A stretch of 58,108 bases of DNA from Kudoa neothunni (GCA_964304625.1 OZ199840.1:4556658-4614765); one strand, 5' to 3'; shown: positions 2,790-58,108, counted from the first letter of the stretch. A program made the numbers and translations. Notes: generated by a model not told the origin, from the sequence alone.

Positions 2790-3720
2790 TGGACTTGGGG
2801 GTAAATTTTACCCCATATTTTTTTTGAATTTTAATACTTTAAAAAATCTAATAGTCAATATTGTTGAATAATTTTTAATTCCTATGGATAAAACATTGGC
2901 AAATGCACATTAAATTTTGACGCAATCCACGCGATAATTGGCTTCGTTTACGTTCTGTCTTATGTCGGTACACATCGATGTTTCATTAAAAAAGTAATTG
3001 CGTTAATGCGGAAGAATTAAACGTGTTGCACCAGTTGAAATATTAAAACAAAACACAGGAAGAATTCTTGAATGTTATGAGGAGTTAAAATAATTTTTAA
3101 ATGCGTGAAATGGACAATAAAATTTATAACAATATTCGCTCCATTTAGGAGATTTTTTATAATTTTTCCTCTCGCGGTTTTCACATTTTGCTCATTTTGC
3201 ATTAAGATGTTTCAGTTGGGAAGCATAAACAGTGATTAAACCTGCTTTTATTGTTTTGTTTGTGGAATTGTTCAACGATTTCTTCAAGAAAATCACGCGT
3301 TTTAATTTATTACGAACATAAAAATTCAACATATTCTTTTCTCGGAAAATAAAAATGCTGCCATAGGGGGCTCTATTTTGTGATGATAGTATCTCTTTAG
3401 TTTTTAATGTAATGTCTATATAGCCAATTTTTTCCAACAATTTTTCAGCAGAAACATCGATAAGAAGACATTTTCGTGAATAATATGATGTTCATTCTTT
3501 GATAAACAAAATTCATCAATGAAATTATTAGAATCACACATCCTCATCAGGACTGCCAGCAGAGCTATAAAAAAACCCAAGGTCGAGAAAAACACTACTT
3601 TAAAGTACATCAAAAAATAGAATCGTATCTATGAAAGTTTAAACTTTCGATTCAATAATTACGCCTTCGGACTTCAAATTTAAATTTATCGTCGTACGAT
3701 CGCGATGTTTTGACATCAAC
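2790..3720 (-). mobile_element. Highly degenerate piggyBac-like transposase relic (3' part); boundaries approximate
   Basis: Broken minus-strand fragments KIGYIDIT (cf. KGGVD) and NR..PMAAFLF (cf. RWPMA.F), a Cys-containing tail, and palindromic GGGGTAAATTTTACCCC near 2797, a kind of motif seen near piggyBac ends. Confidence 0.3.
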
Positions 3721-44004: not shown

Positions 44005-44432
44005 AACTTCATCTTTATTACTTTTTCTATTTTTTTATCTTTTAAAAAGTTCGTGGTGCATATAGTTACTGAGCCGGGCCAGAATTCGATTTTTAAAAAT
44101 CCTCCGGGTCAAGAAATAACGAATTAGATAGCACTTTAAGAGAGTTTAAATAATTCGGGAACCAAAACAATATGACAATGACCTTAAATCATTTGGAGTT
44201 AGTGCCGGGACAAGAAATTGTTAATTAAAAACCAGGATTGATACACTCCTGCACAGAAATGACCATGATTTAAATTTCGGAATCAAAATCGACAAAGAGT
44301 GATGCTTAAAACTTTTTAGTTATTTTATTTCTATGGGATAATTCGAAATTTCAATATATTTTTTGAATGCTATTAAAAAAAATCTCCAGGCAAAATCTTC
44401 CCCAAGTAACGGTGGTAAGTTCGCGATAGTTA
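44005..44432 (-). repeat. Second (inverted) copy of the 10850-11280 dispersed repeat
   Basis: The reverse complement aligns with 10850-11280 (e.g. GGGGAAGATTTTGCCTGG, GGAGTGTATCAATCC, GACCCGGAGGATTTTTAAAAATCGAATTCTGGCC). Confidence 0.75.
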
Positions 44433-44803
44433 TATACAAATTCAAATTATCGGTATTGAGAATAGAAAAAAACCATTATAAAAAGGTTGGAATCTTGGTT
44501 AATTTATAAACTAAATAATTGATTACATTAAGTTAGCCTACACAATGATTAAATGTACAGACAAATTAATTTTAAACGTTACAATTTGAATTATAAGGTA
44601 AATTTCTCAAAAATGTTTCCATAAAAGTTTATTTGATCCCTAATTTGTCTGTTTAATGAGCATATGAGTAAAATGAATCTTATCAAACTTTACTATTCTT
44701 AACAACAATTTATTATTCAACATGTATACATTCAATAAGCCCATTTCGCGATATATTTTATGAATACAACGATAATTTTCGTAATTTGATTAACTTCATC
44801 AAA

Positions 44804-47778
44804 ATGAAATATTTAGTCTATTCATTGGGAATTTTCCTTTCAATTTTGTGTAACATTTACATTTTGTATTTATTTTATTAATTAAAATATTAGCCAGACA
44901 TGTTTTATTAGCTGGGGTAGCCGGTCCAGATGCATCACAAACTCAAACAACTACAACTAAAATTCTTACCTATAAAATTGTGAAACATACTAATCAATTG
45001 AAAGTTAATTTAGTATTAAGTGGTACTGATTATACTTCAAAACATTGTCATATAAAAAAGTTAAATGAGGCTAATAATGTTTATGGAGAAATCGATACGT
45101 GTCCAGAAAATAATGTTGGCACTAGTACTGGAACATGTGTTAGGACATGCACAGAAGATGATATAAGATTTGCTTACGATAAATTTTCTCCGAGGACCAA
45201 ATATGTGGAAGTTTTTGTTGCCGGTACAGCTGTAGAGGCTTCTACAAAAACTACAGACCCAACTATCTTTGGACTTGAGATAGGTAGTTTATATTTTTTT
45301 AAAATTAATCTAAAATTTCATTAGCTTTACTGGTAAATCCGCAAGTTACAGTAACTACCACAACCGGGAATAAATTAAAATTTAGCACAATAACTTGCAA
45401 AAATGTTGATTGCCCAATATATTACAAGGGTGTTGAATATGCTTCTGGAACTAAAGGAGCAAGTTGTATAGCAGAAAATGATACGAATAATGAAGTTGAA
45501 TTTGATTTGATGATACCTCATTATGAAATGAAATGCGTGAATTATCCAAGTTTCTTTTATAAACTTCAGAATACATACACATTAATGAACACAGGCGTTT
45601 ATATACCTCAATATTACGTTACATATAGTAACCAAGAAAAAACTAAATACTTATTAAAATTTACGAACAAATTTCCTTTTGAAATTTGTAAGTTCAGTAT
45701 TAAAGATGAGTCAGTCGCAATCGATGCTCAAAGTACAAACGATTACAAATCAAATTGTGGTGAGGAAAATAAAGAATGTTATGCACCGTGCAACAGCGTT
45801 GAACTCACTTTTGAGGAATCAAAACCAGTCGTTGAAATTTTAATTCAATCCAGACATTTTCCACTCCATAAAATTGAGGCCAAATATTATGGCTACACAC
45901 AAAAGAAATATGGTAATATTGAATAAATTTTTTAAATAATAACCTTTTAGTTATTACGGAAACTAATGATGCTAATGAAGCTGGCAAATTACTATCATCA
46001 TACTCAACAGTTGGTGTCACGTTATATGTAGCTTTATTTAAACCTGGTACTGTTGATACCAAGTTTACACAATGCACTGTAAATTATTACGCTGCTGACA
46101 AACCAATGTCTACCACTACCACTACCACCGCCACTAGAGCACAATGCGATAGTTCCAATACACAATCATGTGCCGCGACATGTGCTGATAAGTTGACAAT
46201 ATTACGGCTTGCACCCGGTAAACCATACATTCTTGAAATTGCTGCAGCAGCAACTGCACCAGGAGAAACCAATAAAATCCCAGCTAATTTTAAAGAACAT
46301 ATATTTTTCAGAACAAGTCAATGTATAAAAATATCTACATAATAATTACATGAAAATTTAATTTAGCGAATGACGCATCAAAAATATTTCCTACTGTTAC
46401 ACCAACAATACGAGATACAAGTTTATCTATCAAGGCACTTAATGCTGAAACGTCGATTTCCCAAACTAGCACCACATGTGCTTATTATCTAAGTCCCCGA
46501 GGAAAGGATACATATGTTTGTGCAATGTGCGTTGATAGTTATCCATGCAGAGGATATTGTGGGGAGTCTCAAACTATCGTGGGGTTATCTCCAGGAACCG
46601 ATTATGATCTCAAAGTTGTTGCACACAAAGATTATGGTTTCAAAGTTCACCAAATCAGAACTGGTATCATATTTTTTCATAAAATAATAAATGAACAATT
46701 TTTAAGCTTTGTCAACATTTACACTTGAAAAACAAATGTTGGATAAAGGTTTTAAAGTCGCAGGTTCCTTATCATCGCCTTACCCAGCAGCCGTATGTCA
46801 TTACAAAGTTAAAGTTAAACAAGGAGAAGATTATGGACTAATTTACGAATGTCCATCACGAACTCCAACAAGAGCTGCTGGAAGTTCTACTCTCGTATCA
46901 ACATCAAAAATGGGGGTGGCTAGATCATCAGGAGACCAACGAAACGTAAATGCAGCAACTGCCACCAATACAAATACAATCTCATCGTGCCAAGCACCAC
47001 CCTTATGCAGCAATATCATTTTTAGTGAAGGATACGAATCAGACAAAGATTATCAAGTTTCGGTGACTGCTGTTGGAAGGTCCACAGAAGTTTCAATAAA
47101 TATACCCAAAAGTATTTCTTCATAAATTTTTATATAACCAATTTTAAAATTGAATTAATACTACAACGAAAATTAAAAAATTTACTAATGCTATTTAAAA
47201 TTACATTTTAGACCCATTATTGCCTTCACAACCCACTGATCTCAATAAACAATTAATAGTGGTGATCACACGTGTCGATAAAACATTGACTGTTAGCACT
47301 ACTTTACCTCAAGGTTTGGACGAAAATGCGTTATGCAAATGGCAGTTAAAAAATTCTGGAGAACCCTCAAATCCCATCGTGAAAAAATGCATGACTATTG
47401 GTAAAGGTTGCACTCAATTACCTCGTTGCAAGGAATTCACAATTACAGAAGTTGAGGATATACACGATTACCATTTGACTCTATTCTATAATGAAGATCC
47501 AAATACCTACGGTGTTGGAATAATTAAACAAGGTAACCATCATAATATTTCAATGTTAATTATAAACATTTAATAGGTGAATCTTCAAACAAATCAACGT
47601 AACTTTTGATATGTCATCATTGTTTCTAATTTCTTTTAGATCCAAAAATACAATGTATTAATAATCAATTTTGAGTATTTTAATCTTTATCTTTAGAATT
47701 ATTTCCGTGATTGTTCCAGTTGTTATCGTGGTTATCGGGATAGGTTTCTATTTCGGATACATGAAGAACAAAAATTAG
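44804..47778 (+). CDS. Unknown type I membrane protein, copy 2 (same 10-exon structure)
   Basis: MKYLVYSLGIFLSIL signal peptide, the same introns and modules as copy 1, and an identical TM and MKNKN* tail. No frameshift seen. Confidence 0.85.
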
Positions 47779-48653
47779 AACTCTCCGATAAAAATATTAT
47801 TTAGGCTTTTTATAATTAATTATCAAATATAGTTTGTTATTATCTTCAACTTACTCAAGTATTCGCTGATTTTTAATTTTATCAAACTGTGGATTTCTAC
47901 ACGTACATTTTATTATTAAATTAATTCAATGATAATTTCGACATTCTATGAAATGAAGGTTTTAATTAAGATAGTGTCTCTACACCAGGGATGGAATTTC
48001 GTTCGTTCAAATAATTTGAGGGCTGTAATTTCGTTCGCGTTTGTTCATTAGTAATTAGTGCAAATTAGGAGTCTTGTGAGCGAGCACAGACTTACCACCA
48101 CCGCCTTAGACTATTGGAAGATTATAAATATCGAAATCTAAGAAAGTAGGTAACAGTTATTTTCGGGGACCTACCGGCAATTGGAGCCCAGAGAGGGTTT
48201 TTTCTAATAGCGAAAAAATTCCACAAAAGAGAATGTTCACACATGAACTCATTGACCTTGTTGAAAATGGCGGTCTATTTCGTCAATAAATCTAACTAAT
48301 AATTATGTACAGTATGAGATAGTTATTGATTCATTTTAATTTCAGCATCACAATCGATCTTTTAACAATTAAAAAATTGCTTGTTCGCCCCTTAAGATAA
48401 CTTTGATATTAAAAAATTTCTGTAGCCACCCAAGTCATTGGTTGTGTGAACTCTCTCATGCAGTTTGCTAAACCCTCGTTAGAAAATATACGGCGGAAAT
48501 GATAAAATAATCAAAAGATCGCTTCGATCAAGATTGAAAACGACGTTATTATCCTCCAACCTTGATCTAGCAATCACCAAAATTCTTCAGTGATAGTTAA
48601 GGGAATATCAAAAATCATATTTCTCACTCAGAGCCCCGAACATAGCTATAGTC
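47779..48653 (+). repeat. 3' flank shared by copies 2, 3 and 4 (absent after copy 1); includes a hAT-like end CAGGGATGG at 47986 with CGTTC repeats
   Basis: Aligns with 53390-54277 and with the reverse complement of 55885-56771. Similarity stops at ...CATAGCTA(T/C)AGTC. Confidence 0.8.
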
Positions 48654-50436
48654 AACAACGGTTATTGCGTAGGTGGATATTGGGCACTTTTTGTTATGTC
48701 ATTATTTTATCGTTTTATAAAGTACAGTTCTACCTCATAAGTTTTTTAAGCTATTAATGAAACATTTGGGATTATTTAAGAATTTTTTACAAATACTAGA
48801 AAATGGATATTACGCACTAATTTTAGTCACTGTGAAATTTAACACTAGCTTAAAATCGAAGTGAATCGTCATTATTTGGTGATTTTTATTTTAAAGAAGT
48901 AGAATGAAACTAAAAATTTTTCTATTAATAAAAATGATCCAGAGTTAATTCGTTAAACAACATAAGTTGATCTAATAGTCAATGCGGAATTAAGGGGAAT
49001 ATTTTATAATTATAAATTTTATCCACGTGCATAAATTTATTAGTATCTTGGTTTTATTTCAGGATTGCGTGTTGTTTTATAAAACTGAGTAGATTCGTTT
49101 ATCTTAACTATATGTGTGATCATTGTACATAAATAAAAAAAATTAATATTAAAAAGTTTTGTACGCTTTCATTATTAGATTGTTTCAGAGCTAATCAACT
49201 CTAATATTTTTCATAAAATAGACGATAAAATTACGGAATTAATTTCTTAATGAAAGCGTAGTTTAATCGCTGATCAAACCTATTTTAAAAAAAAACAGTG
49301 TAGAAAGTATTTTTATTATATTTAATGTAAATAATAAAACTACGAACAAATGGATAATGAGAACAATGTGGATGGAATTTAAATATTTTTTATAAAAAAA
49401 TGTGGTCTCAATCACCGAATAAAGATTGATTTCTTTTATACGTATATCCCCTTAGAGCCTAATATCAATGATCAAATTGATGATAAATCAAATATACATG
49501 ATCCGATAGAATCTTGGAGGGAATCCGACCAACGACAAGCAATTATAACAAAATTAATTAAAATTTTAACTTTATTCGGTTTAATTAATCAATTAAAATC
49601 AATAATTATTGATTAATACTAAACTAAATATCCATATTTACAATAGACGAGAAACGTGTATAATGGTTCAGATGAAGTAACCCATTCATTAAATCTTATG
49701 TGAAATATTAAAATGATATATTAAAAAAATAATTTTCATGTATAACCTGTTGGAAAATAACCATACACTACATTAATCCCGAAACATTACTAAGTTTTGT
49801 TTATTGTCTGCGCAATCTAACAGTTATATGGAGCAGAATTTTTATTTTGTTCCATTTTAAATTCTCCCAAAAGTGCGAACTAGCATTATATGGAGGGTTT
49901 TTTCTGTTTAAGCGAATCTTTACATATAAAAAGATAATTATTATAGGAGGCGAAAGTTTTTGTTGTACTTGCACAAGATCATTTAAATTTGTTCTTCTGC
50001 AAAGGAATATTTTTATTTTGTATTCCTGAAATCTATAATATTTTAATTTTATATAACTTTTAATGTAAAATTTATCTTTGAGAAATAGGTTTTCATCAAT
50101 TAATTAAATTATAGACAAATAAAGAGAAAAAGTTATATTACAATATTACACCATAGAGTGGGTTCGTTGGTCATTATGATGAAAATAAATAATTTCAAAA
50201 AGTTAAATAATTATATTAAACATTTTTCAAATAAATTTATCCAAAGTGTTTCCATCGGTGCTTACATGATCCTTAATTTTCATTTTAAATATGGATGTAG
50301 GTAAAATAAACTTTATTAAATTTTATTAATGTTAAAAAATAATTTATTAATCAACATCAATACATTCATTAAAACGATTCGCGATATATTTTATAAACAA
50401 ACCGATAATTTTCGTCAATAGATTATCTTCATTACA

Positions 50437-53389
50437 ATGAAATGTTCAGTCTATTCAATGGGAATTTTTCTCCAATTTTTTTGTAAATTTTATACACTCT
50501 ATTTATTTTATTAATTAAATATTAGCCATATATGCTTTATTAGTCGAGGCAAGCACACTGGTGGCACCACAACCTCAAACAACTACAACTAAAATTCTTA
50601 CCTATAAGATTGTGAAACATACTGATCAAATGAAAGTTAATTTGGTATTAAGTGGTACTGCTTATACTTCAAAGTATTGTCATATAAAGAAATCAAATGA
50701 GGCTGGTGAAGCTTATGAAGAAATCAATCCTTGCCCCGAAAAAGATAATAACTATAGTACTGACAAATGTGTAAGGGCATGCATTGGAGAAGGAAATAAA
50801 TTAGAATTCGATAAATTTTCTCCAAGAACAAAATATGTCGAAGTTTTGTAGATGATAATGCTGAAACTGCTTCTACAAAAACTACAGACCCAACTATCTT
50901 CGGACTTGAGATACGTAATTTAATGTTTTTAATTAATATAAAATTTTTTTTAGCTTTATTGGTGAACCCACAAGTTACAATAACTACTACAACTCACGTA
51001 AATTGAAATTTAACACAATAACATGCAAAAATGTCGACTGCCCAATATATTACAAGGGTGTTAAATATGCCGACGGAACAGCTGGTGGAAGTTGTATCGC
51101 AACACAAGGCACGAGTACCGAGGATGAAGTAGAATTTGATTTAATGATACCCCATTATGAAATGAAATGCACGAACTATCCAAGTTTCTTTTATAAAACT
51201 TCAAAATAGATACACATTAATGAAGACGGACGTTTATGTACCTCAATATTATGTGACATACAATAAAGAAAAAACTAAATATTTATTAAAATTTACTAAC
51301 AAATTTCCATTTGAAATTTGTAAGTTCAGTATTAAAAAAGCGTCAACCGGCATTCCTCAAGGTAGTACTAATGATTACAAATCAAATTGTGGTGCCGCAA
51401 ATAAAGATTGTTATGCACCATGTAACGACGTTGAGCTTATTTTTGAGACATCAGAAGGGGTTGTTGAAGTTTTAGTTGAGACAGACATTTTCCGCTCCAA
51501 GCAAATGGAGCCGAACATTCTGGCTACATACAAAAGAAATATGGTAATATTGAATAAATTTTTTAAATAATACGCTCTTAGTTGTTACGGAAACTGATGC
51601 TGAAAATGACACTGGAAATTGTTATCAAATTATTTAGCAACTGGTGTCACGTTAAATGTTCCTTTATTTAAACCGAGCGATATTAACACCAAATTTTCCG
51701 AATGTACTGTAAATTATTACGCTGCTGATAAACCAATGCCTACCACCGGCACTACGGCACAATGCAATAATTCTGGTACAACACAATGTGCAACAGATTG
51801 CACCGCTTCATTAACAATAATCCAGCTTGCAACGGGTAAACCTTATATTCTCGAAATTGCTGCATCAGCAACTGTATCAGGAAGTAACAATAAAATCCCA
51901 GCTAGTTTTAAAGAGCATATATTCTTCAGAACGAGTAAAATTATGAAAGTTCCTAATGATGACGTATATATTTAATTTAGCGAACGACGAATCAAAAACA
52001 TTTCCTACTGCTACACCAACAATACGAGATACAGGTCTATCTATTAAGGCACTTAATGTTGAAACATCGATTTCAAAAACTAGTACCACATGTGCTTACT
52101 ATCTAAGCCCGCGAGGGAAAGATACGTATGTTTGTGCAATGTGCGTTGATAGTTATCCATGCAGAGGATATTGTGGGGAGTCTCAAACTATCGTGGGGTT
52201 ATCTCCAGGAACCGATTATGATCTCAAAGTTGTTGCACACAAAGATTATGGTTTCAAAGTTCACCAATTCAGAACTGGTAACATATTTTTTCATAAAATA
52301 ATAATTAAATAATTTTTAAGCTTTGTCAACACTTACACTTGAAAAACAAATGTTGGATAAAGGTTTTTAAAGTCGCAGGTTCCTTATCATCGCCTTACCC
52401 AGCAGCCGTATGTCATTACAAGTTAAAGTTAAACAAGGAGAAGATTATGGACTAATTTACGAATGTCCATCACGAACTCCAACAAGAGCTGCTGGAAGTT
52501 CTACTCTCGTATCAACATCAAAAATGGGGGTGGCTAGATCATCAGGAGACCAACGAAACGTAATGCAGCAACTGCCACCAATACAAATACAATCTCATCG
52601 TGCCAAGCACCACCCTTATGCAGCAATATCATTTTTAGTGAAGGATACGAATCAGACAAAGATTATCAAGTTTCGGTGACTGCTGTTGGAAGGTCCACAG
52701 AAGTTTCAATAAATATACCCAAAAGTATTTCTTCATAAATTTTTATATAACCAATTTTAAAATTGAATTAATACTACAACGAAAATTAAAAAATTTACTA
52801 ATGCTATTTAAAATTACATTTTAGACCCATTGCCTTCACAACCCACTGATCTCAATAAACAATTAATAGTGGTGATCACACGTGTCGATAAAACATTGAC
52901 TGTTAGCACTACTTTACCTCAAGGTTTGGACGAAAATGCGTTATGCAAATGGCAGTTAAAAAATTCTGGAGAACCCTCAAATCCCATCGTGAAAAAATGC
53001 ATGACTATTGGTAAAGGTTGCACTCAATTACCTCGTTGCAAGGAATTCACAATTACAGAAGTTGAGGATATACACGATTACCATTTGACTCTATTCTATA
53101 ATGAAGATCCAAATACCTACGGTGTTGGAATAATTAAACAAGGTAACCATCATAATATTTCAATGTTAATTATAAACATTTAATAGGTGAATCTTCAAAC
53201 AAATCAACGTAACTTTTGATATGTCATCATTGTTTTCTAATTTCTTTTAGATCCAAAAATACAATGTATTAATAATCAATTTTGAGTATTTTAATCTTTA
53301 TCTTTAGAATTATTTCCGTGATTGTTCCAGTTGTTATCGTGGTTATCGGGATAGGTTTCTATTTCGGATACATGAAGAACAAAAATTAG
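50437..53389 (+). CDS. Unknown type I membrane protein, copy 3 (about six 1-nt indels, mostly in homopolymers: sequencing error or pseudogene)
   Basis: MKCSVYSMGIFLQFF signal peptide and the same exon layout. Frameshifts near 50845, 51195, 51482, 51617, 52365 and 52562. Identical TM and tail. Confidence 0.75.
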
Positions 53390-54277
53390 AACTCTCAAAT
53401 CAAAATATTATTTAAGCTTTTTATAATTAATTATCAAATATAGTTTGTTATTATCTCCAATTTACTCAAGTATTCGCTGATTTTTAATTTTTATCAAACT
53501 GTGGATTTCTACACGTACAATTTTATTATTAAATTAATTCAATGATAACTTCGACATTCTATTAAGTGAAGGTTTTAATTAAGATAGTGTCTCTCTACCA
53601 TTGATGGCAATTTCGTTCGTTCAAATAATTTGAGGCTGTAATTTCGTTCACGTTCGTTCATTAGTATTTTGTGCAAATTTGGAGTCTTGCGAGCGAACAA
53701 GAACTTACCATCCCCGCCCTAGACTATTGGAAGGTTCTAAATATCGAAATCTAAGAAAGTAGGTAACAGTTATTTTCGGGACCTACTGGAAATTGGAGCT
53801 CAGAGAGGGTTTTTTCTAATAGCGAAAAAAATCCACAAAAGAGATCGTTCACACATGAACTCATTGACCCTGTTTAAACTGCTGGTTTATTCCATCAATA
53901 AAGTTAATAAATCTAACTTATAATTATGTGCAATATAAGGTAGTTAATTGGTTCTGTTTAATTTCACATAACAATGGATCTTTTAACAATTAAAAAATTG
54001 CTTGTTCGCCCCCTTAATTATAACTTTGATATTAAAAATTTTCTGTAACCACGTAAGTCATTGGTTGTCGTGAACTATCTCATGCAGTTGCTTAAACCAT
54101 CGTTAGAAAATATACGGCAGAAATGATAAAATAATCAAAAAATCGCTTCGATCAAGATTGAAAACGACGTTATTATCCTCCAACCTTGATCTAACAATCA
54201 CCAAAATTCTTCAGTGATAGTTAAGAAAATATCATAAACCATATTTCTCACTCAGAGCCACCAACATAGCTACAGTC

Positions 54278-55884
54278 CGAATGGAGAAATTTTGCCGATG
54301 GGAGAAAGATTACCTGCGCAAAACGTGAATAAAACTTAATTTAAATCGCATATTAACTGCGTAAGACCAGTTAAGGGACCCAGAATGAGTGGAAATTCAA
54401 ATAAAGATATTATTATGCTTAAGACTACCAAAAATAACCGACATGATGCTTTGTGAAGATTATTTTTACGTCAAAGATTACAAAAAAAATGAAATTCAAT
54501 ATTGGAGGTGTCAAGTTAGGACAATGTAGAGGAAGGTTAAGAATAACAACTCTTGATAATACGGAAAACATTGAAAAAACTGGATTTCACAATCACGTCG
54601 TAATCGGAGGTAGGACAAAAATAAAAAATATTCCACAATAAAATAAAATTCTTAGCAGAAACTACTTTATATCCAACAAACAAGGTGTATAGTATTGCAA
54701 CCAGCAAAGAAAAAAATTAATGAATTGCCGATTATTCCTAAATCTTTTGTATACAAAAACATAAGAAATTTAAGAAAAAGAAACAATATTCAAATTAATC
54801 CAGCGACAAATCTTTGTGATGAAATTAAGACTCTGAGAGATGAATCCTTTTGTTTGTTCGATTCAGGTTCTGATGACGAAAACAGAATAATCATTTTTTC
54901 TACAGAGAAAAACCTTTTACATCTGAAAAATTCAGATTTTTGGATTGCGGATGGAACTTTTAACGTTGCGCCGAAGGGATTTTTTTCAGTTATATGCTAT
55001 TCATGGTAATGTATTCACAGGGTTTTTCCACTAGCTTTTGTTTTAATGTCGGACAAGTCTGAGAAAAATTACACGAAAATTATTGAAATAATCAAGGAGA
55101 AGGGTAATATGGAGTTACCGAAATCAATAATTATTGACTTTGAAGTAGCAGCATATAATGCCTTTAAAAAAGCATCAAAACATGATGTACAATTTTGTTT
55201 GTTTCATTTCGGACAATGTAATTACCGAAAAATTCAATCACCTGGACTTTCCGAGGAATACCAAAATAACCTAGATTTTAAAGTTTTCGTTAATAATGCG
55301 TTATGTCACTCGCATTTGTCCTAAAGATTTTGTTGAAGCTGAATTCAAAAAATTGTGTACTTCTGCTGAAAAATTTCAGATTCCTATCTTCAATTATTCT
55401 TAAATATTTTGAAAAAAAACTTTATTAGAAGCAAAAAGTATCCCATTGAATCATGGAATGCATACCAAAGAGTGCTGAACGATGTAAAACTAACATCTAA
55501 CAACGCAGAAATATTCCATCGGCCACTTTTATTCCCGCTTTGACCAATCACATTCAGGATTAGTCACATTCATCACAAATCTAAAAGAGCAACAAAGTTT
55601 GATTGAACAGGAAATTATGTATCAGCTATGTAATCCAAATACAACAAATCAGAACAAAAAGACGGAAATAAAAATGGAAAAAATTGAAGGAGATATGCTC
55701 GAATTATGGTTCCTATTATGGTACATTTTATGTAGAAGCTATATCTAAAACGTATAATTGGAAATTAAAATAAAATTATAGGTACTTTGCGTTTTTTTTC
55801 AATAAAAAATTACGGTTGATGTATTTCTTTGCATTCGCGCATGCGCGGGGTAATCTTTCTCCATCGGCAAAATTTCTCCATTCG
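54278..55884 (+). mobile_element. FLYWCH-type Mutator-like element (MULE), ~1.6 kb, ~43-bp TIRs
   Basis: TIR CGAATGGAGAAATTTTGCCGATGG(G)AGAAAGATTACC begins exactly where the flank diverges from the copy-2 flank. Contains a transposase. Confidence 0.8.
54385..55773 (+). CDS. MULE transposase with N-terminal FLYWCH zinc finger (several 1-nt frameshifts)
   Basis: YFYVKD...QYWRC..QCRGR...FHNH (FLYWCH), WIADGTFNVAP (D), IIIDFEVAAYNAF (D), FCLFHFGQ (CxxH) and TSNNAEIFH (E). Confidence 0.8.
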
Positions 55885-56771
55885 GACTGTAGCTATGTTG
55901 GTGGCTCTGAGTGAGAAATATGGTTTATGATATTTTCTTAACTATCACTGAAGAATTTTGGTGATTGTTAGATCAAGGTTGGAGGATAATAACGTCGTTT
56001 TCAATCTTGATCGAAGCGATTTTTTGATTATTTTATCATTTTCTGCCGTATATTTTCTAACGATGGTTTAAGCAAACTGCATGAGATAGTTTCACACAAC
56101 CAATGACTTACGTGGTTACAGAAAATTTTTAATATCAAAGTTATAATTAAGGGGGCGAACAAGCAATTTTTTAATTGTTAAAAGATCCATTGTTATGTGA
56201 AATTAAACAGAACCAATAACTACCTTATATTGCACATAATTATAAGTTAGATTTATTAACTTTATTGACGAAATAGACCGCCATTTCAACAAGGTCAATG
56301 AGTTCCATGTGTGAACGATCTCTTTGTGTGGATTTTTTCGCTATTAGAAAAACCCTCTCTGAGCTCCAATTTCCAGTAGGTCCCGAAAATAACTGTTACC
56401 TACTTTCTTAGATTTTCGATATTTAGAACCTTCAATAGTCTAGGGCGGGGATGGTAAGTTCTTGTTCGCTCGCAAGACTCCAAATTTGCACAAAATACTA
56501 ATGAACGAACGTGAACGAAATTACAGCCTCAAATTATTTGAACGAACGAAATTGCCATCAATGGTAGAGAGACACTATCTTAATTAAAACCTTCACTTAA
56601 TAGGAATGTCGAAGTTATCATTGAATTAATTTAATAATAAAATGTACGTGTAGAAATCCACAGTTTGATAAAATTAAAAATCAGCCGAATACTTGAGTAA
56701 ATTGGAGATAATAACAACTATATTTGATAATTAATTATAAAAAGCTTAAATAATATTTTGATTTGAGAGTT

Positions 56772-58108
56772 CTAATTTTTGTTCTTCATGTATCCGAAAT
56801 AGAGAAACCTATCCCGATAACCACGATAACAACTGGAACAATCACGGAAAATAATTCTAAAGATAAAGATTAAAATACTCAAATTGATTATTAATACATC
56901 GTATTTTTGGATCTAAAAGAAATTAGACAAAAAATGCATGACATATCAAAAGTTACGTTGATTTGTTTGAAGATTCACCTATTAAAATATTTATAATTAG
57001 CATCGAAATATTATGATGGTTACCTTGTTTAATTATTCCAACACCGTAGGTATTTGGATCTTCATTATAGAATAGAGTCAAATGGAGTATCGTGTATATC
57101 TTCAACTTCTGTAATTGTGAATTCCTTGCAACGAGGTAATTGAGTGCAACCTTTACCAACAACCATGCATTTTTTCACGATGGATTTGAGGGTTCTCCAG
57201 AATTTTTTAACTGCCATTTGCATAACGCATTTTTCGTCCAAACCTTGAGGTAAAGTAGTGCTAACAGTCAATGTTTTATCGACACGTGTGATCACCACTA
57301 TTAATTGTTTATTGAGATCAGTGGGTTGTGAAGGCAATGGGTCTAAAATGTAATTTTAAATAGCATTAGTAAATTTTTAATTTTCGTTTGTAGTATTAAT
57401 TCAATTTTAAAATTGGTTATATAAAAATTTATGAAGAAATACTTTTGGGTATATTATTGGAAACTTCTGTGGACCTTCCAACAGCAGTCACCCGAAACTT
57501 GATAATCTTTGTCTGATTCGTATCCTTCACTAAAAATGATATTGCTGCATAAGGGTGGTGCTTGCACGATGAGATTGTATTTGTATTGGTGGCAGTTGCT
57601 GCATTTACGTTTCGTTGGTCTCCTGATGATCTAGCCACCCCCATTTTTGATGTTGATACGAGAGTAGAACTTCAGCAGCTCTTGTTGGAGTTCGTGATGG
57701 ACATTCGTAAATTAGTCCATAATCTTCTCCTTGTTTAACTTTAACTTTGTAATGAATACGGCTGCTGGGTAAGGCGATGATAAGGAACCTGCGACTTTAA
57801 AACCTTTATCCAACATTTGTTTTTCAAGTGTAAGTGTTGACAAAGCTTAAAAATATTTAATTATTATTTTATGAAAAAATATGTTACCAGTTCTGAATTG
57901 GTGAACTTTGAAACCATAATCTTTGTGTGCAACAACTTTGAGATCATAATCGGTTCCTGGAGATAACCCCACGATAGTTTGAGACTCCCCACAATATCCT
58001 CTGCATGGATAACTATCAACGCACATTGCACAAACATACGTATCTTTCCCTCGCGGGCTTAGATAGTAAGCACATGTGGTACTAGTTTTTGAAATCGATG
58101 TTTCAACA
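56772..58108 (-). CDS. Unknown type I membrane protein, copy 4 (3' part only, runs off the window; many indels)
   Basis: The reverse complement encodes the same modules 5-7, micro-exons, TM and MKNKN* (stop at 56772-56774). Confidence 0.75.

Follow-up and report, generated by a model that had tools for sequence, protein, structure and literature searches.

A decayed MULE between near-identical inverted gene copies in Kudoa neothunni: most likely a product of gap repair rather than of transposition

Gene-bearing palindromes whose arms are kept alike by arm-to-arm gene conversion are known from the ampliconic regions of primate Y chromosomes. Formation of the Tetrahymena rDNA palindrome is a related inverted-repeat case, and Tanaka et al. 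reportedly described, in 2002, palindromes at short inverted repeats. In yeast, fold-backs and palindromes form at Alu inverted repeats after a break; once resection has left single-stranded DNA, inverted repeats that are diverged and lie some distance apart anneal there and prime synthesis of a fold-back (PMC10164571). Homology-mediated end capping is, in the outline given for it, a related palindrome-forming case (PMC3834830). Animal TIR elements give rise to duplications without transposing, through gap filling accompanied by template switching (Tan et al. 2021, PMC8277862). Alternative transposition of Ac/Ds is expected to keep the element ends intact and to leave matching TSDs at the breakpoints (PMC8225341).

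Here we describe a locus of the myxozoan fish parasite Kudoa neothunni in which copies 3 and 4 of a local six-copy gene family converge tail-to-tail around a decayed FLYWCH-MULE. The event that it most likely records, gap repair or template switching, is of a known kind, and transposition would not have made the locus. The locus shares with fold-back palindromes a short central inverted pair (here the ~40-nt MULE TIRs, 1.5 kb apart) with the intervening sequence as spacer, mirror-image flanks on both sides and a junction inside the short repeat. It differs in that its 2.35-kb tract is interstitial and runs into an inverted paralogue which was already there, rather than forming a dicentric or chromosome-scale palindrome, and in that we infer the break from sequence. 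Like the primate Y palindromes it has inverted gene copies, a unique spacer and near-identity by intrachromosomal conversion; unlike them it measures 2–4 kb instead of 10 kb to megabases, and only the conserved 3' part is homogenised, a part that is also highly similar in the non-palindromic copies. As in the Pack-TIRs (PMC8277862), an animal TIR element is the site of repair synthesis that duplicates host sequence without transposition; Pack-TIRs, however, carry the captured sequence between their TIRs, whereas at this locus the host sequence that was duplicated is external to the element, and nothing has been mobilised. With the Ac/Ds rearrangements (PMC8225341 and, in outline, PMC3744419) it has in common breakpoints at transposon ends and inverted flanking genes. 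Unlike those, it lacks intact termini and matching TSDs at the two breakpoints tested, and its element is dead.

The inverted repeat and the scaffold gap

The window, by which we mean the whole stretch of 58,108 nt that was analysed, contains the following features.

44431–48653, + strand: family copy 2, the reference for the ancestral tail (gene, then TE-X, then element S)
48649–50231, + strand: element S, Tc1/mariner-like (TA/CAGTC...), 3'-truncated; many dispersed copies begin at the same nucleotide
50232–54277, + strand: family copy 3, from homology to copies 1, 2, 4, 5 and 6, open segments and a transmembrane (TM) exon
51968–54320, + strand: left arm of the near-identical inverted repeat, extending 43 nt inside the MULE
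53603–54272, + strand: TE-X, a dispersed-repeat fragment; dispersed copies continue past its cut point
54273–54277, + strand: CAGTC, the first 5 nt of S, kept on both sides of the MULE
54278–55884, + strand: decayed FLYWCH-MULE, 1607 nt, from Pfam matches, a broken frame and comparison of termini
54389–54526, + strand: FLYWCH zinc finger, N-terminal half with a stop at its end (PF04500, 21.7 bits, below the cut-off of 23.6)
55010–55321, + strand: MULE transposase domain remnant, DDE (PF10551, 33.5 bits, cut-off 27.6, E = 6e-8)
55885–58108, − strand: right arm as far as the window shows it, holding the 3' part of inverted copy 4; its sequence is duplicated by the contig beyond a 200-N gap

The likely order is copy 3 (+), the 1.6-kb MULE and copy 4 (−). 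The same sequence had been predicted to lie inverted on both sides of the MULE for at least 2.2 kb, and 52057–54320 and 55842–58108 are indeed inverted copies (2286 nt aligned, 97.4% identity) with the element between them. The end of this arm at 58108 is due solely to a 200-N scaffold gap directly after this position, the last of the window. In extended coordinates (the window plus the sequence beyond 58108, that is, the gap and then the post-gap contig) the full arms measure ~4.1 kb (50243–54320 vs 62771–58681, 94.2% identity). The complete inverted copy 4 is present on the post-gap contig.

Pre-gap positions 55467–58108 (2.65 kb) repeat post-gap positions 58309–60939 directly (98.6% identity). 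In 44 columns the pre-gap copy differs privately, and 22 of its 27 private indel columns adjoin the same base (homopolymer-type). It agrees with the left arm against the post-gap copy at 0 sites, and with the post-gap copy at 33. Because of these private, mostly homopolymer differences and the 0 vs 33 split, we regard the pre-gap 2.65 kb as a redundant, low-quality, error-rich contig end, an unmerged contig overlap. The truncation of the arm at 58108 and an extra partial MULE just past the window are assembly redundancy at the gap. The inverted repeat at the locus is real; some of what is apparent there is an artefact of the assembly gap. Care is needed with gene models and copy counts at this place, and probably also at other 200-N gaps in this low-coverage assembly, which is apparently the ~7x HiFi assembly of Kudoa neothunni and gives the left MULE junction from one contig.

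Near-identity of the arms is confined to the inner 2.35 kb, starting at 51968. Copies 3 and 4 show dense differences as far as 51967, where these cease, which gives the identity profile a sharp edge, and the outer halves, only 78–96% alike, are those of old, diverged paralogues. Between 52057–54277 and the post-gap copy there are 17 substitutions, all within two short patches (53004–53263, patch 1, and 53870–53894, patch 2), together with ~10 single-base indels private to the left arm; the arm-to-arm exchange proposed in the original prediction is borne out by this pattern. The inner 2.35 kb and the outer ~37 nt of both TIRs form a single continuous near-identical inverted repeat around a spacer of 1521 nt of unique sequence. 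A CMTIG/CMVVG difference between the copies had been taken to argue against a simple fold-back read. The difference is real, being found also in the independent post-gap contig, and the argument holds, given the unique 1.5-kb centre and arm differences confirmed by a second contig. The flank–MULE junction occurs three times genome-wide: in the left arm, the pre-gap arm and the post-gap arm.

The MULE and its left end

The reading frame of the element is split across three frames by stops and frameshifts, with the remainder of the FLYWCH finger in another frame, and there is no intact transposase ORF; this copy is evidently coding-dead. Its TIRs lie at ~54278–54314 and ~55848–55884 (~37–43 nt in this and other copies). 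The genome holds at least 10 near-full copies at 86–96% identity, and the interior of the present one is collinear with 10 others. A foldback-like unit with the gene in its arms had been envisaged, and Pack-MULEs had been named as carriers of gene pieces. Against the Pack-MULE form, the gene lies outside the TIRs and the junction is unique to this locus. Against the foldback form, the arms consist of the resident gene and other TEs which do not accompany other MULE copies, none of the 10 examined having inverted flanks beside the element.

The absence of a TSD was correctly foreseen. The 9 nt to the left of the MULE, GCTACAGTC, are the reverse complement of the 9 nt to its right, GACTGTAGC, and not a direct repeat of them, and no direct repeat of any length was found at the two ends. 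Two other copies have a 9-bp TSD, GATAATAAT in L006 and GAGAAAACC in L010, and L007, L008 and L009 have direct flank repeats of ~80, 77 and 52 bp, respectively. The family ends are GGT...TCG, left ends starting GGTATGGAG and right ends finishing CATTCG (each in 5/5 other copies). The present MULE begins CGAATGGAG; its CGA is what the right end reads in reverse complement, and the outer part of the left TIR is of the right-end type. Both of its TIRs share GCCGATGG and GATTACC, which are in no other copy compared, and left-type sequence resumes after ~nt 37 of the left TIR. Because of the right-type left end, the shared private TIR variants and the missing TSD, we conclude that the left MULE junction is evidently a recombinant formed within the TIR. 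As in fold-back or gap-repair products, the mirror flanks are continuous with a short central inverted repeat and the recombinant junction lies inside it.

The gene family and its tails

Copy 3 comprises a membrane-protein gene, its 3' flank, the truncated repeat TE-X and the first 5 nt of the Tc1/mariner-like S. The multi-exon gene (~50519–53389) is predicted from its sequence to specify a Cys-rich FN3-like single-pass membrane protein, and its TM exon ends ...VIVVIGIGFYFGYMKNKN, with the stop next. Pfam returned weak fn3-type matches only on the gene exons, and a protein-atlas search with the last ectodomain exon gave just generic beta-sandwich (FHA-like) neighbours at <=0.90, none usable. 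The ciliate code (table 6) was tried and rejected, the 147 long ORFs which it gives vs 10 under the standard code being about the chance number for AT-rich sequence with one stop codon. A nematode origin was set aside as well, the SL1 spliced-leader sequence not being found in the genome. Dozens of paralogous family matches lie elsewhere, among the matches listed.

The tails of copies 3 and 4 each run from the gene 3' end through the TE-X fragment and the CAGTC of S to a MULE end. TE-X, copies of which occur on all three chromosomes (76–86% identity), is cut at a TA by S, and S follows copy 2 at the position where the MULE follows copies 3 and 4. Dispersed S copies and copies 2 and 5 read TA/CAGTCAACAACGG; copies 3 and 4 read TA CAGTC/MULE. 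Other S copies have longer 3' ends. Similarity between S and the MULE as the cause of this shared position was rejected, there being no homology between them and S having Tc1/mariner-like TA/CAGT ends. Copy 6, the counterpart of copy 3 in a duplicated dimer, has a different tail: it departs from the copy-3 alignment at ~53512–53530, ~70 nt before TE-X, and continues without a match to anything else at the locus. In patch 2, copy 3 resembles copy 5 and the TE-X consensus, which suggests that copy 3 natively carried TE-X and S. In patch 1, copy 4 is the same as copy 6, whereas copy 3 is the same as copies 1, 2 and 5. The gene 3' half is 93–100% alike across all copies, and conversion is evidently frequent within the family.

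It had been proposed, as one possibility, that the MULE produced the fourth copy. Beyond the gap, copy 4 covers unit positions 1–168, absent from copy 3, and so reaches 168 nt further 5', where its upstream region matches that of copy 5 in inverted orientation (86.6%). In places its outer windows are nearest to copy 5 or copy 6. Copy 4 is evidently an older, independent paralogue with its own upstream region, and since it has this region and the outer halves have diverged, the MULE did not create it. A role of the element as an engine of family amplification likewise found no backing: the other five local gene copies were found to have no member of the MULE family beside them, only 1 of 10 other MULE loci has a weak gene-family match in its flank, and the present locus shows no transposon-driven amplification engine.

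Repair through the TIRs and its alternatives

We favour, with moderate confidence, a history in which the inverted paralogues underwent homology-directed gap repair or template switching with each other and annealing of the TIRs completed the process. The MULE would first have inserted, with a normal 9-bp TSD, 5 nt inside S downstream of copy 4, and its present right junction would be the original one. A later break to the right of the conserved 3' half of copy 3 may then have let the broken end invade the 3' half of copy 4, with repair from the inverted paralogue. Synthesis would have proceeded outward across TE-X and CAGTC and on into the reverse-complemented right TIR, and the new strand would have been captured by annealing to the MULE's own left TIR. 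Such a process would be gap repair of the SDSA/BIR type and would amount to a template switch by fold-back at the TIRs. A single repair event would thus explain why the left flank and TSD are lost, why the left terminus is right-type and why the inner arms are identical. Mismatch repair might have passed over the two diverged patches, or they might stem from later short conversions by other copies. The MULE would have taken a passive part, in that its TIRs offered ~40 nt of homology in inverted orientation. Nicking by transposase at the element's left end could have begun the break but is not required. We infer the ancestral allele, which is absent from the assembly, and assign the donor arm from the TIR evidence alone. 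A search of the assembly for the left junction predicted for that allele (reverse-complemented remainder of S, TSD and GGT MULE end) found none. The one-step model leaves unaccounted for an inverted S fragment which lies 6.4 kb past copy 4 and resembles the S of copy 2 at 96.5%.

That fragment is what an inversion would leave if two MULE copies had stood at the same site in the tails of copies 3 and 4 and recombined through their TIRs, with a separate arm-to-arm conversion. Either NAHR between inverted TIRs of both copies inverted the copy 4 segment, or a larger palindrome lost its centre in a deletion by single-strand annealing of TIRs. This reading also predicts the hybrid left TIR and the lack of a TSD, agrees with the frequent conversion in the family, and has a parallel in the non-matching, inverted TSDs which NAHR between inverted TEs leaves (PMC8225341). 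It nevertheless needs at least two events where one suffices, the junction is at no other family copy, and no second MULE or remnant was found distally, between copy 4 and copy 5; we consider it unlikely.

Less probable still is a chimeric read or mis-join in the 93–100% conserved gene 3' half of a low-coverage meta-assembly. A matching published assembly has ~7x k-mer coverage, a contig break with a redundant, error-rich end falls inside the structure, and the left arm has its ~10 private single-base indels, all of which would fit. A fold-back or missing-adapter read, however, has no unique spacer, and here there is 1.5 kb of MULE interior collinear with other copies. Furthermore, the right junction is in two contigs, arm-specific variants are linked to their own junctions, and the TIR changes from right type to left type within 37 nt, too short a stretch for an assembler join.

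We hold it to be very improbable that alternative transposition (sister-chromatid or reversed-ends) by the MULE transposase made the inverted duplicate and hence copy 4. The breakpoints do coincide with the element ends, and Ac/Ds makes inversions and inverted duplications (PMC8225341; in outline, PMC3744419). The left terminus, though, is CGA... and not the GGT... of the five other copies, there is no matching TSD, the element is coding-dead, and copy 4 is old, diverged and has its own upstream region; sister-chromatid transposition would not, moreover, put a mirror image of the adjacent flank at the other end. Insertion of the MULE into the centre of a pre-existing perfect palindrome, with the TSD later erased by conversion across flank and TIR, draws on the fragility of palindrome centres but is hardly credible, as the old centre must fall exactly 5 nt inside S on both arms and the TIR-spanning conversion of the gap-repair model is required all the same.

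If gap repair did take place, the locus would be a sequence-level record that the 40-nt inverted ends of a dead transposon can complete a repair which welds inverted paralogues into a near-perfect palindrome, and the recombinant TIR and lost TSD would be its trace. As a long shot, we might suggest that MULE-centred mirror duplications recur in this genome and that convergent read-through yields a hairpin RNA acting as an RNAi-type silencer or switch. Were this true, transcripts reading through the 2.35-kb inverted repeat would fold into a long hairpin directed at the conserved 3' half which the local gene copies share, a built-in silencer or switch for a candidate variant-surface family. Such silencing may be likened, in the outline available for that case, to that of Ac by an inverted Ac allele in maize. 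RNAi control of the Giardia VSPs is a further analogue.

The inverted repeat and its central MULE

Repeat search and self-BLAST identified 52057–54320 and 55842–58108 as inverted copies (2286 aligned nt, 97.4% identity) separated by a unique centre of 1521 nt. The original prediction, that a FLYWCH-MULE is flanked by the same sequence in inverted orientation, is thereby borne out, with the corrections given below. The centre, plus approximately 43 nt on each side, makes up an element of 1607 nt (54278–55884), of which at least 10 near-full copies (86–96% identity) occur elsewhere in the genome. It possesses a Pfam MULE domain at 55010–55321 (33.5 bits, above the curated cut-off) and a match to the N-terminal half of a FLYWCH finger at 54389–54526 (21.7 bits against a cut-off of 23.6). 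Its reading frame is broken across three frames with stops, and the window MULE is a decayed copy. As had been noted, it lacks a TSD: the 9 nt to its left (GCTACAGTC) and the 9 nt to its right (GACTGTAGC) are reverse complements, not a direct repeat. At least 150 places in the genome match the MULE transposase domain above the Pfam cut-off, many of them with open frames of 300–570 aa; MULEs form a major part of this 40-Mb genome and possibly continue to be active.

The MULE lies between two members of a gene family with six local copies.

Local copies of the FN3-like membrane-protein gene family (window numbering continued past 58108)
c1: 15.3–18.9 kb, + strand
c2: 44431–48653, + strand
c3: 50232–54277, + strand, flanking the MULE
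c4: 58723–62950, − strand, flanking the MULE
c5: 71.7–78.9 kb, + strand
c6: 80.5–83.8 kb, + strand

Every copy encodes modules rich in Cys, each about 100 aa long and occupying one exon, followed by a transmembrane exon and a six-residue tail. Against Pfam the family gives weak fn3 matches only; its product is plausibly a surface protein, and a putative antigen at most. Dozens of remoter paralogous matches (67–69% identity) are found elsewhere in the genome.

The scaffold gap and the order of the locus

In the next 30 kb that we fetched, a run of 200 Ns (extended 58109–58308) directly follows window position 58108. Past this gap lie MULE positions 1190–1607 and then a complete inverted family copy, c4 (extended 58723–62950). 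The end of the window is therefore a scaffold gap, which the original prediction could not take into account, and the complete inverted copy 4 lies beyond it. The 2.65 kb before the gap (55467–58108) is duplicated, at 98.6% identity, in the 2.65 kb after it (L002:201–2831, in the fetched stretch L002). A three-way alignment of the left arm (L) with the right arm before (R1) and after (R2) the gap gave no column in which R1 agreed with L against R2, 33 in which R1 agreed with R2 against L, and 44 private to R1. The last are mainly single-base indels, and 22 of the 27 indel columns adjoin the same base. This distribution indicates that R1 is the same locus as R2, poorly read. Judged from the alignment, R1 and R2 are an unmerged dovetail overlap between two contigs, with about 2% error-type differences in the pre-gap sequence, which gives rise to a spurious partial MULE and a spurious extra partial gene copy. 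The true order is likely to be copy 3 (+), MULE, copy 4 (−).

The published Kudoa neothunni assembly (40.2 Mb, N50 12.0 Mb, three chromosomes plus mitochondrion) was built from HiFi reads at approximately 7x k-mer coverage with hifiasm-meta and scaffolded with YaHS (PMC12239612). The same kind of overlap may be hidden at its other 200-N gaps; fetched stretch L013 also contains an N run. Between 52364 and 54300 c3 carries some 10 private single-base indels, several of them exonic, relative to c2 and c4 in an otherwise identical stretch. These are probably residual low-coverage assembly errors, not real frameshifts, and together with the pre-gap sequence they suggest residual errors, including possible false frameshifts in c3.

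Relationship of copies 3 and 4

The alignment of c3 with c4 (about 4.1 kb, 94.2% identity overall) falls into two parts. Left of 51968 the copies differ densely (78–96% identity per 250-nt window), and over some stretches c4 resembles c5 or c6 more than c3; between 51968 and the MULE, c3 and c4 are near-identical. Because the 3' half of the gene is 93–100% alike across all six copies, the excess identity of c3 and c4 is clearest at 51968–52550 and in the 3' flank. Extension of the contig, proposed earlier as a means of locating the arm ends and the N-terminal side of copy 4, yielded a complete gene reaching 168 nt further 5' than c3, whose upstream 170 nt match the upstream region of c5 in inverted orientation. 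With a 5' region of its own, copy 4 is, on these comparisons, an older paralogue; the suggestion that the window MULE produced it is not upheld. c4 and c5 stand head-to-head, their upstream stretches (extended 62952–63123 and 71486–71653; L002 and L003) being homologous, inverted, 86.6% identical and about 8.5 kb apart, with a longer copy of S (a Tc1/mariner-like element, see below) and other repeats between them. The cluster thus holds one tail-to-tail and one head-to-head pair.

Within the three-way aligned part (52057–54277) all 17 substitutions outside the MULE fall in two patches, the second lying in TE-X, a dispersed-repeat fragment in the gene tails.

Substitution patches between c3 and c4
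Patch 1: 53004–53263, includes the CMTIG/CMVVG codons; c4 = c6, c3 = c1, c2 and c5
Patch 2: 53870–53894, within TE-X; c4 = c2, c3 resembles c5 and the repeat consensus

The CMVVG/CMTIG difference remarked on earlier is real and arm-specific, and lies in patch 1. The CMVVG codons and linked intron changes are private to c4 and c6 (in c6 at extended 83.2–83.5 kb); these two copies lie 20 kb apart, one inverted and one direct, and patch 1 has the look of a short gene-conversion tract exchanged between them. Such short conversions are evidently common in this family.

The MULE junctions and their origin

TE-X occupies the last 670 nt of each arm (53603–54272) and is dispersed on all three chromosomes, where its copies continue beyond the arms' stop point. 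At this point c2 and c5 pass into the 1.58-kb dispersed element S, independent copies of which all start TA/CAGTCAACAACGG, a Tc1/mariner-like end at TA. Both c3 and c4 read ...TA CAGTC and then MULE, which places the MULE 5 nt inside S with the remainder of S absent on both sides. The genome contains this 31-nt flank–MULE junction exactly three times, in L, R1 and R2. On another chromosome, on the reverse strand of L023 (C1:13394375-13401374) near 3715, TE-X is cut by S at the same TA (...catagctgcagtc/AACAACGG; 74–91% identity); either TE-X and S were copied together as one unit, or S has a hotspot at that TA of TE-X.

Ten other MULE copies, each with 3-kb flanks, were compared. Among them, all five preserved left ends start GGTATGGAG and all five preserved right ends finish CATTCG, while clean TSDs of 9 bp (GATAATAAT and GAGAAAACC) flank two complete copies. 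At its left end the window MULE starts CGAATGGAG, an exact match to its own right end in reverse complement. GCCGATGG and GATTACC are common to both of its TIRs and absent from every other copy compared, and beyond about nt 37 the sequence is again of the normal left-end type. The inverted identity of the arms thus runs through the flank into the TIR, and ends where TIR homology ends. As read from these termini, the left junction arose when the right TIR, as reverse complement, interacted with the left TIR, and not when transposase joined a left end to its target.

On this evidence it is highly probable that the locus is real, with two genes set tail-to-tail about a dead MULE and a junction recombined within the TIR. 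For the specific route we lean, with some reserve, towards gap repair from the inverted paralogue with capture at the left TIR. The MULE would first have entered S at a point 5 nt inside it, on the downstream side of inverted copy 4, and generated a 9-bp TSD. A break would later have occurred on the right-hand side of the conserved half of copy 3, and the inverted paralogue would have served as the repair template. Invasion in the conserved 3' half would have been followed by synthesis across TE-X, CAGTC and the right TIR (as reverse complement), and the new strand would finally have annealed to the left TIR and been captured there. A single event of this kind would account for the identity of the inner arms and its sharp outer limit at 51968, as well as for the hybrid TIR, the absent TSD and the lost remainder of S. 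In the two patches, either islands of heteroduplex would have escaped repair or short conversions would have followed later. The direction of donation is read from the TIR, and the ancestral allele, with the pre-event junction, was not found in the assembly. In yeast, inverted repeats anneal in resected DNA and prime fold-back synthesis even when a spacer separates them and their sequences have diverged (PMC10164571), and animal TIR elements undergo transposition-independent gap filling with template switching (PMC8277862).

The same hybrid end is predicted if two MULE copies were inherited and TIR–TIR recombination, as an inversion or as a centre deletion of a larger palindrome, was followed by conversion. 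An inverted S fragment 6.4 kb past copy 4 is suggestive in this respect, but no second MULE or remnant was found beyond copy 4, and we consider this history unlikely. Low assembly coverage might lead one to suspect an artefact, which is more doubtful still given that the spacer between the arms is unique, that two contigs contain the right junction, that each arm has variants of its own and that the switch falls within 37 nt. Alternative transposition, as originally proposed, leaves intact termini and matching TSDs (PMC8225341); the window MULE has neither the usual left end nor matching TSDs, making this explanation very improbable. That the MULE simply inserted into a palindrome already present, its TSD being erased afterwards, is just as improbable, as the same TIR-spanning conversion would still be required.

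Pack-MULE and foldback-like readings were rejected: neither the ten other copies with their flanks nor the genome-wide junction search, which returned only L, R1 and R2, revealed the defining features of such units. Nor was evidence found for the proposed engine of family amplification. Palindromic rearrangement mediated by inverted repeats, accompanied by conversion between inverted paralogues, is a known class of event; the locus is a well-documented natural case of it, in an unusual organism and a candidate surface-protein family.

Three other, independent copies of this MULE family, L007 (C2:989626-991201), L008 (C2:5578665-5580198) and L009 (C3:87158-88654), are abutted at their ends by direct duplications of the target of approximately 80, 77 and 52 bp, 92–96% alike; the two complete copies described above have the normal 9-bp TSD. 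TSD-like repeats of this length are uncommon in the Mutator superfamily, and hint at insertion or repair via widely staggered breaks.
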